A DNA stretch of 64,000 bases from Thecamonas trahens ATCC 50062 (taxonomy: Eukaryota; Protista; Apusomonadida), in NCBI RefSeq assembly GCF_000142905.1, contig NW_013657652.1:248001-312000 (forward strand), written 5' to 3'. Shown piece by piece: positions 5,701 to 8,340 of this stretch (its first letter is position 1; every line of letters begins with the position of its first letter). The notes under the pieces were generated by a model. The model did not search any database. It was not told where the DNA came from and saw nothing but the letters and a program-made list of their open reading frames with translations. Made by a program: the position numbers and the translations under genes.

Positions 5701-6521
5701 ACTGGCGAGAGCGCCGAGAGCGTCGAGCCTGTCCCGAGCCGGCCATACATACCCGATCCGGTGGCCAGGACGCCGCCGGCCGACGTAAGAAAGAGCGTAA
5801 AGTCTGAGCCGGCCGCAATGTCGACAATCCGCTCGCCAGCGTCGAGCACGTCGACAAACGAGACAGCGACGGGCGAGCACTCGGAGCCGGTCCCGCCGGT
5901 CCCGAGCTGGCCGGACGAGCCGCGACCCCAGGCAAAGACATTCCCAGCAGCATCAAGTGCCACAGTGTGTGCGCCACCGGCCGAGACGCTCGCAATGCGA
6001 ATGCCGTCCAGTGCCACCACCTGAGTCGGCAGAACGGCCTGCCCAGTGGCGCCGAGGCCCAGTTGGCCGTCGTCTGCGAAAAAGCGCGCCAAAGTGGTGG
6101 AGGAGGCGGGGGGGGGGGGGGGGGGGGAGGCACGGTGAGTGGCACAGGAGGGGGGGAAGAGGGGAGAGGGGGAGGAGGGAGGGAAGGAGGGAAAGAGGAG
6201 GGAAAGGGCGACATAGGCGGTGGATGGCGGGGCGTATGGGCCCGTGCAGGGGGGCGCGGCAGAGGGGACAGGCACGGCCGCAGAGAGGGACAGGATCATG
6301 ATCGGGATCGGTGGCGTACCTCCCTTGCCCCAGGTGTAGACGGCACCGTCTGCAGAGAGGGCAGCAGAGTGGTACTCGCCGGCAGTGACAGCAGCGATGC
6401 AAACGCCATCGAGGGCAGCGAGTAAGCGAGGCGAGCGGATGGACGAGGTGGCGCCGGTCCCGCACTGGCCGTACATGGAAAAGCCAAAGGCCGCCACCCG
6501 GCCTGCCGAGTGCGCGTTCAT
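2705..6521 (-). CDS. RCC1-repeat beta-propeller protein with Ser/Arg-rich linker and long C-terminal coiled coil
   Basis: Repeated AGxxH(S/T)xxL...VYxWG...GQLG RCC1 units. Intron 6319-6074 (GTACGC...CGCAG) joins WGKG|DDGQLG. Two apparent single-base frameshifts at about 5485 and 4180 link the three ORF segments. Confidence 0.75.
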
Positions 6522-6692
6522 GGCCAAGCGGGCGACAGGTCTTGCCTCGTCCGCTCGCCTGCCCGCTCGGCAGACGCGGTGATGATGTTGTTGCTGCACC
6601 GATGGGGGAAAATGGATTTACGGCTGGCTAGCATGGGATGCCATGGCAATGCCCATGGATATAACCATCGGCCGACGGGGGGCGGGGTGGTC

Positions 6693-8036
6693 TTAGGCGG
6701 GGTACCCTGATCGAGTCGGGCATTGGCCATCGTCGCAGTACCGCGGCGCCGCACGTGGGAGTGAGTGAGGGGGAAACAGGGAAAAAAGCCGTGAGGAAAA
6801 GGCAGAAAGATAGGCAACTTACAGTTGATGTCGTACGACGCGCCACACTTGCTGCCAGCGTCGGAGAATTGCTTGATAGCGGGATGGGACCAGCCGTTGA
6901 AGGGCCGAAAGTCGTCAAACGACGGGACGCCGTCGTAGTCGGCGTACCAGAGCGGAAGATCCGAGGCAAAGGTGCCAGAGCCAACGATGCCCGGGTACTG
7001 CGAGAGCGAAGTGTACATGCCCAGGTGGAAGCCGACAGCGCGGGCCTCGGAGATGAGGTCCTGGATGAACTGGGCGTTGGCGTCGAGATCGTGGCCCCAG
7101 TACAGGCCCGGGCCCTCGATGTCGAGCCAGACCATACCGAAGCGGACATTGTGCTCGCTGAGGAATGTGTGCAGGTCCTGAACCTGACCCTGCGGGTTGC
7201 CGCAGCTAGAGCAGGCTGTGTGTGTGTGTGGGTGAGTGGGAGGGGAGGGAGGGTAGCGCCGGGAGGAGGGGTGGCAGGAGATGGAGCACGTACGCTGTAG
7301 ACGAGGCGAATGGAGGCAGGAAAGGTGTGAGCATGAGTCATGAGTAAGTGAAGAAAGAGGGTATGATGGCGATGGGGGGAGGGGGGAGTAGCGTACACTG
7401 TGGTCGAGATGCGCGCGCGCGGATACAGGTGGCGAGACGGGCTGGTGGTGTGAGTTGGGGGAAGAGGGAGGAGGGGGGGGGGGATGGATGGATGGATGGG
7501 ACGTACAACATGTACACGTCGACATCGTGCATGCCGCCTGCCCATGCGGCGGCGACGGTGCCCGGGGCGTTGGTGTCGGGCCTGCCGGTCGAGTGCCAGG
7601 CCTGTCGTGTCGCAGCGGGAGGGGGGAGGAGGAGGAGGAGTGAGTGCGAAAGGAAAAAGGAGGAGGAGGAGGAGGGGGGAGGGGGGAGGGGGGGTATGCA
7701 ATGGATACCCATGGCATGGCACTGGGTCCGTGTGGCTGCATGTGCCCGTGGTTGTACCCGTGGCGGCCTGTGTGCATCCAGCTGGCGGCAGGCACTGTTG
7801 CATGGCGCGACTGAGATCAGGTGCGGCGGAGCCGATGGGGAGGGGGGGGGGAGGAGGGGTGGGGTACATACACGGACAACGGTGTAGGTCAGGTTGAGGT
7901 TCACAAGGCAGCGCATCGAGTCGGTGGAGACCGGCTGGGAGACGTCGATGCCATAGACCCGCGAGGGGAAGGCAAGAGTAGAGCCGGCAAGAGCAAGGAT
8001 GACAGCAGCCGCAAGAACCAGCGGGAGCAGGTGCAT
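6693..8036 (-). CDS. Secreted GH25-like (protist/nematode-type) lysozyme; 6 exons including two 1-nt exons
   Basis: Signal peptide, GIDVS, VVR|AW, DVYMFPC, WLDIE, LWYADYDG, FxxFNGW, KQF, DINWYP*. Exons 8036-7872, 7601-7507, 7397, 7294, 7215-6823, 6706-6693. Confidence 0.88.
7294..7294 (-). other. Putative single-nucleotide exon (C) of the lysozyme gene
   Basis: Minus strand reads CTACAG-C-GTACGT, with branch point GCTCAC upstream at about 7332-7327. Supplies the first base of the CCC (Pro) codon. Confidence 0.8.
7397..7397 (-). other. Putative single-nucleotide exon (T) of the lysozyme gene
   Basis: Minus strand reads CCACAG-T-GTACGC, with branch point AACTCAC upstream at about 7456-7450. 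Completes the TTT (Phe) codon. Confidence 0.8.
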
Positions 8037-8340
8037 GGCGGGAGAGCGAGGGAGGTATGTCCGCTCTCCGCTCTCCGCCCGCCACTCGCTGGGGATGTCA
8101 CTTTTGGCGTGCGAACCTTCTCCGAGCCACCGCTTACAATGCCATCCATCACAAAAGGGCACTCCGGTTGGAGCAGGAATGGGACAGAGAGGCACTGGCA
8201 GCCATCATTAACGTATCTTCATGTCCACCTCATCGTCTGCACTGCCGTCTCTGTCTGTGTCTCCGGCTCCGGTTGCATTGCCACTGTCCGAGGCGGCAGA
8301 GGCTGCGTCAGCGACAGCACACCCCACTCGCACTCGGTTC

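Follow-up and report, generated by a model that had tools for sequence, protein, structure and literature searches.

Two exons of a single nucleotide each, the second following directly on the first, occur in a lysozyme gene of Thecamonas trahens ATCC 50062. These tandem exons are real; single one-nucleotide exons were already known in plants and fungi, and a tandem pair was not found in the literature searched. The gene is very probably an expressed gene for a secreted lysozyme of the glycoside hydrolase family 25 (GH25) type, in which the F-P-C-x-x-C motif is put together from four exon pieces, two of them one nucleotide long, with three complete spliceosomal introns between them. It lies on the minus strand of the window, by which we mean the whole stretch of 64,000 nucleotides that was analysed (contig NW_013657652.1, positions 248,001 to 312,000). 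Unless stated otherwise, positions are those of the window and sequences are given in the reading direction of the gene.

Anatomy of the lysozyme gene

Exon 1 (7872-8036) starts with ATG at 8036-8034, encodes a signal-peptide-like N-terminus and ends with TYTVVR, its translation being the N-terminus of the deposited protein P0001. It is followed by a phase 0 intron of 270 nt (7602-7871, GTATGT...GACAG), exactly the length that is skipped by an RNA contig of sequencing run X4. Exon 2 (7507-7601, 95 nt) is translated as AWHSTGRP...DVDVYM and ends with ATG (7511-7509) plus two further bases, TT (7508-7507); the matches of two RNA contigs (X4 record 10 and X7 record 16) stop exactly at 7507.

The next three introns are read from the sequence, and no RNA contig covers the first two. 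Intron a (7398-7506, 109 nt) runs from GTACGT (7506-7501) to CCACAG, with a CTCAC element, a branch-type motif that recurs in the next two introns, at 7454-7450. After it a lone T at 7397 supplies the third base of a Phe codon (TT|T), in the context CAG|T|GTACGC (7400-7391). Intron b (7295-7396, 102 nt) extends from GTACGC (7396-7391) to CTACAG, with CTCAC at 7331-7327, and leads to a lone C at 7294, the first base of a Pro codon (C|CC), in the context CTACAG|C|GTACGT (CAG|C|GTACGT occupying 7297-7288). Intron c (7216-7293, 78 nt) begins with GTACGT (7293-7288) and ends with CACACAG, with CTCAC at 7236-7232. Both lone bases are supported by the conserved residue that they complete and by the number of letters in the RNA contigs (see below).

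The large exon (6823-7215, 393 nt) opens at 7215 with CC TGC TCT AGC TGC GGC AAC, that is CC followed by CSSCGNPQGQ, and continues to GASYDIN plus a T. It holds the core of the GH25 domain including WLDIEG, as seen from its translation, its match to Pfam PF01183 and 35 homologues, and RNA contigs of four runs match it with 0 mismatches. The gene ends with a phase 1 intron of 116 nt (6707-6822, GTAAGT...GATCAG), again exactly the length skipped by an RNA contig (run X2), and a last coding exon (6693-6706) reading GG TAC CCC GCC TAA, or W-Y-P-A-stop, where P0001 ends with NWYPA. The 3' UTR extends at least to 6606 (X2 record 7).

Introns a, b and c thus interrupt the message at three consecutive nucleotide positions, in phases 2, 0 and 1, and the joined sequence is ...ATGTT|T|C|CCTGC... 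At both 7397 and 7294 a YAG stands upstream and a GT downstream, the flanking introns are complete, and the base is needed for the frame and for a conserved residue. One base separates AG from GT at both sites, so that they do not qualify as zero-nucleotide recursive splice sites. When T and C are both left out the reading becomes TTC CTG CTC TAG, an immediate stop as the original prediction had said, and retention of all three introns adds 289 nt (1 mod 3), which breaks the frame.

On the minus strand the lengths of the introns and the positions of the lone bases all agree with that prediction. The CTCAC that it had assigned to each intron is present as well, 53, 33 and 17 nt upstream of the AG of introns a, b and c respectively; in intron a another AG (7443-7442) lies between this element and the acceptor. 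The three introns consist of 72-75% pyrimidines, resemble the other T. trahens introns examined and are built like the two introns of the gene that RNA confirms. Their donors had been described as those of the other introns in the window. This holds for GTACG[TC] in introns a, b and c, but the other two introns of the gene start with GTATGT and GTAAGT, so that the consensus has to be widened to GTA[ACT]G[TC]. An attempt to derive an intron consensus for the window from composition gave a result too noisy for use. Several T. trahens introns are preceded by an exon that ends in T (GAGT|GTACGC, CGT|GTATGT, AACT|GTAAGT) rather than in the usual G.

The F-P-C motif and the deposited gene model

The large exon is 100% identical to P0001, deposited as 'lysozyme [Thecamonas trahens ATCC 50062]', and has 34 further relatives, many of them with Pfam PF01183 (glycoside hydrolase family 25). 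Among the 24 homologues in alignment A1 the F-P-C site reads F in 23, P in 19 and C in 21, after which x-x-C-G-N follows. The T. trahens sequence encodes C-S-S-C-G-N directly after the CACAG acceptor of intron c, upstream of the acceptor chosen in the public model and preceded by CC. Exactly two bases are wanting: one to complete TT[T/C] for Phe and one to start CCC for Pro, and the lone bases follow this order, T first and then C. The motif was predicted to be rebuilt by these two bases, and the homologues together with the position of CSSCGN bear this out.

The public model instead assumes one intron of 301 nt (7506-7206) that ends at a CTCTAG acceptor, whose AG (7207-7206) lies inside the large exon. 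P0001 therefore reads DVYMFCGNPQ, with DVDVYMFCGNPQGQ around the joint, and it alone among the 25 aligned sequences has a gap of four residues (P-C-x-x, here P-C-S-S): the single long intron deletes them. That gene predictors would mis-model the locus has therefore come true, and the deposited T. trahens lysozyme protein is wrong by four residues, one of which is a conserved cysteine. Scanned against PF01183, the public model (which is to say the protein without P-C-S-S) scores 22.4 bits against a gathering cut-off of 27, compared to 37.1 bits for its 59%-identical relative P0002.

The closest parallels in protein architecture are found in protist-type GH25 lysozymes. Those of Dictyostelium purpureum and Polysphondylium (P0006 and P0007, with PF01183) have the same length and signal peptide as the T. 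trahens protein, and the blocks G-x-D-x-S, F-P-C-x-x-C-G-N, W-L-D-I-E-G, P-L-W-Y and N-W-Y-P are common to all. Gene structure, however, is unlike that of T. trahens.

Evidence from RNA

Parts of the lysozyme gene were found in eight sequencing runs from five studies, and four runs from four studies (X1, X2, X4 and X7) were aligned to 6500-8300. The RNA stems from environmental or mixed samples rather than from a defined culture, and is 100% identical to the reference. In these alignments 7209-7256 is masked as a repeat, so that the evidence on the junction is a count of letters and not their identity.

Two contigs bridge the region. In X4 record 10 (262 nt, from a seawater metatranscriptome) letters 1-76 match 7133-7208, letters 86-179 match 7507-7600 and letters 180-262 match 7871-7953; in X7 record 16 (206 nt, from another study) letters 1-40 match 7507-7546 and letters 50-206 match 7052-7208. 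All matches have 0 mismatches. Between 7208 and 7507 both contigs have 9 letters, no more and no fewer: the 7 bases of 7209-7215 plus 2, the number being known and the letters masked. The two lone bases are thus present by count in mature RNA in contigs of two studies. We enumerated the GT-AG routes through 7520-7198 that use no more than three introns, each 40 nt or longer: only the route with the two microexons keeps exon 2 up to 7507 and adds 7+2 bases. The modelled introns 7871-7602 and 6822-6707 are missing from the RNA with exact borders, and 7232-7475 is covered by no RNA contig in the four runs.

The count as such fits a second reading too, namely one non-canonical intron that ends two bases early (...CACAC|AGCCTGC) and leaves the AG at 7217-7216 in the message. 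There would again be 9 letters (7209-7217) between 7208 and 7507, in frame and under the mask indistinguishable from 7+2, and the acceptor would stand at the end of a (CA)n run. We nevertheless consider this very unlikely. The message would read ATG TTA GCC TGC, or M-L-A-C, in which the nearly invariant Phe and the conserved Pro are both replaced. The intron would moreover have to be of the GT...AC type, which to our knowledge is not a known splice class. Two perfect AG-N-GTACG sites carrying the right letters in the right order would be left without explanation, and likewise the same arrangement in the LC8 gene described below.

Contig pieces in all four runs pass through 7206-7208. Since they retain the AG of the public acceptor (7207-7206), that acceptor is not used in them. 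It is conceivable that some, at least, of the transcripts do follow the public model: it is in frame, uses a GT-AG intron and is the deposited annotation, and contigs drop rare isoforms, so that a minor form could escape notice. The chance of this seems slim, however, given that two of the contigs reach exon 2 with 9 extra letters and that the model removes a Cys found in 21 of the 24 homologues. The annotated acceptor is, in any case, unused in the contigs seen.

The sub-threshold Pfam score of the public protein could also be read as a sign of a decaying or unspliced gene that makes no working mRNA and in which the splice-like sites are leftovers. The probability of this is practically negligible. 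Spliced RNA free of mismatches is found in several runs, with the other two introns correctly removed and no contig over the introns. The gene retains a complete full-length frame, which shares 59-61% identity with homologues above the Pfam cut-off, and keeping all three introns would, as stated, destroy that frame.

Two further observations concern the RNA itself. X1 record 2 and X2 record 9 both end exactly 16 letters past 7208, i.e. 7 bases into exon 2, where the X4 and X7 contigs continue; at 7513/7514 the assembly graph may have been split by a polymorphism (at 7514), or there may be a second isoform. Furthermore, metatranscriptomes from seawater and the subsurface, as well as two runs that carry the names of other organisms, contain transcript pieces 100% identical to 6606-7953, which means either that the strain is widespread or that there was carry-over between libraries.

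A second, predicted pair in the LC8 dynein light chain gene

A gene for the LC8 dynein light chain was found by means of Pfam PF01221 at L012:1495-2485 on the minus strand (G000 contig C17, about 401,936-402,926). Its first exon ends with AAG AAG GAG (KKE), after which the sequence reads GTACGT...GTGTAG|T|GTACGT...ATCTAG|T|GTAAGT...TTCACAG|C GAC CGC AAG, the downstream part reading DRK. The layout is hence KKE, an intron of 399 nt, T (L012:1951), an intron of 236 nt, T (L012:1714), an intron of 86 nt, and C-GAC. Exon 1 matches positions 2-43 of the Pfam model with 43.9 bits and the last exon positions 45-86 with 75.4 bits (cut-off 29.1); the two matches are colinear. Exactly one Pfam position is absent between the exons, a Phe, and T+T+C provides a codon for it. 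By its sequence and its Pfam matches LC8 is confirmed as a gene with a second, predicted tandem pair of one-nucleotide exons.

This locus bears on the possibility that the lysozyme arrangement is an artefact of the genome sequence. If the assembly had shortened an original TTT to TT where exon 2 ends, and an original CCC to CC where the next exon begins, a single phase 0 intron would be enough and the AG-N-GT sites would be coincidental. RNA would then also give 9 letters, both sites are short homopolymers, and the genomic sequence considered is that of the assembly. Even so, two independent errors would be needed, one precisely at each exon border, and two AG-N-GTACG sites would have to carry T and then C by chance. 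In LC8 the missing TT adjoins no homopolymer (the borders are GAG|GTACGT and CAG|CGAC), and there the explanation fails. We therefore hold an assembly error to be highly improbable, and two one-nucleotide exons to be very probably the proper reading of the lysozyme gene.

Genome scans

The pattern AGNGTACG has 5 matches in the window against 4.3 expected (128 kb of strand, about 3e-5 per base), and the three matches elsewhere in the window lie in ordinary sequence that is not intron-like. What is far beyond chance is the combination: two sites about 100 nt apart, in a gap where exactly two bases are missing, with the right letters.

Genome-wide, YAGNGTAMGT shows no enrichment: it occurs 284 times, and its reversed control 489 times. 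Tandem pairs of AGNGTAMGY that are 31-271 nt apart number 24 against 40 in controls, and are intron-like only at lysozyme and LC8. Screening 100 of the 284 single YAGNGTAMGT sites by flanking composition gave no further one-nucleotide exon; this screen is crude (the first site of LC8 would fail it), and the scans are partial and cover one donor class. As far as such partial screens go, one-nucleotide exons are rare in T. trahens and the four known ones form two pairs.

A third tandem candidate, at C1:386430, was rejected: it consists of an ordinary donor of the MED31 gene and a match in coding sequence. That gene, for a Mediator subunit, lies at L034:1230-1815 on the minus strand (G000 contig C1, about 386,160-386,745) and has one GTACGC intron of 121 nt. 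The pattern scan also showed that at least four contigs (C5:404984-405081, C14:458527-458624, C21:57265-57362 and C67:62953-63050) share an almost identical stretch of some 100 nt (AGCGTACGCCTCGACTTGTCCCCCC...), which is a multi-copy gene or a mobile element.

Comparison with known splicing systems

There is experimental or RNA-seq confirmation of single one-nucleotide exons in Arabidopsis APC11 (Guo & Liu 2015, PMC4674806), where removal of the introns one after another was also proposed, in plant VPS55 (PMC8831610) and in Fusarium CYP621A (PMC12940212), and 13 cases are reported for Coprinopsis cinerea (PMC12230235). They resemble the lysozyme exons in that a base between canonical AG and GT is needed for the frame and for a conserved motif, was missed by annotation and is supported by RNA. 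T. trahens differs in that two such exons are directly consecutive, with three introns at three consecutive positions, and that this occurs twice in one genome. It is also the first case of one-nucleotide exons in an apusomonad. In the literature that we searched for consecutive, tandem or adjacent microexons, whose coverage is incomplete, a tandem pair of one-nucleotide exons was not found; the shortest neighbours are a 5-nt and a 12-nt microexon of rice (PMC8831610). The original prediction had said that no back-to-back pair was known to it, which agrees with the literature searched; the T. trahens genome itself, however, has a second pair in LC8.

Recursive splicing at ratchet points, or zero-nucleotide exons, has been described for Drosophila Ubx and in work by Duff 2015 and Sibley 2015 (as cited in PMC4674806). 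There, too, an acceptor adjoins a donor and one site is used twice in succession, the first ligation setting the upstream exon beside a fresh donor. Ratchet points, however, leave no base behind and belong to very long introns, whereas the lysozyme gene retains one coding base per step between introns of 78-109 nt, their stepwise removal being presumed. Stwintrons, the spliceosomal twin introns of fungi, consist of one intron nested in a splice signal of another, with no exon base in between. They share with the lysozyme gene the packing of splice sites that forces an order of excision; unlike stwintrons, the lysozyme introns lie side by side and each of them is complete.

Proposed splicing of the intron triplet

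In a tandem pair three pairs of splice sites have to work within a span of 4 nt of mRNA. Exon definition cannot account for this, so neighbouring introns would have to go one after another. Given introns of 78-109 nt and exons of one base, recognition would have to be across the introns, and introns a, b and c would thus each be defined as a unit by the splicing machinery (intron definition). With a single base between an acceptor AG and the donor GT that follows, neighbours would not be engaged at once and would be removed in succession, much as in a recursive ratchet in which one base stays behind every time. The simplest order would be a and c first and then b: introns a and c have no crowded site in common and could go first, after which b would stand between exon ends of normal appearance. 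Neither lariats nor partly spliced intermediates were seen, and we therefore infer both the order and the mode of recognition.

Origin of the triplet

Compared to each other, introns a, b and c are no more alike than shuffled sequence (z = -0.02, 0.54 and -0.8), and the 291-nt stretch is present only once in the genome. A recent duplication or an introner family is accordingly not supported. Folding of 7196-7526 gives no notable RNA structure (z = -0.68), so that nothing of this kind brings the splice sites together.

A second, divergent GH25-type lysozyme gene in T. trahens, a paralogue (L002:1003-1899, plus strand; G000 contig C2, about 677,300-678,200) is 35% identical and apparently intronless across the domain, reading Y-A-F-I-C-P-N-G-G without interruption at the equivalent site, and a metagenome homologue (L004) is uninterrupted there as well. 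Metagenome contig VFQP010007266.1 from an unknown eukaryote (L006:340-1240, plus strand) has one intron, ATG TTC CCG|GTACGC, two bases downstream of the position of intron c. These homologues suggest an old intron near the F-P-C site in some lineage, by which the triplet is left unexplained. Further on, the L006 gene has an 18-nt microexon (G TAC GCT CAC TAC GAT GG) between two introns. A search of metagenomes for close relatives yielded distant homologues only, at most 51% identical.

Implications

Sites such as these will defeat standard gene predictors and spliced aligners. The splicing order and the minimal spacing of splice signals, on the other side, become directly testable in a natural gene.

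That the same layout is present in the highly conserved LC8 gene of the same genome suggests that the lysozyme triplet is no isolated accident, and poses a concrete question on intron gain. Intron triplets at three consecutive nucleotide positions might be created in T. trahens in some specific way, or be kept there for some specific reason. The triplets occur in two unrelated genes, both across a Phe codon, and the sample of sites that was screened contained no isolated one-nucleotide exons; these observations would fit the idea, which we regard as tentative and rather doubtful at present. If it is true, either a single mutational event would have made three introns at once, or the arrangement would be a selected checkpoint of splicing in which any error leads to a frameshift. 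The two loci would then be a natural substrate for studying how the spliceosome handles an acceptor and a donor that are one base apart, twice running.
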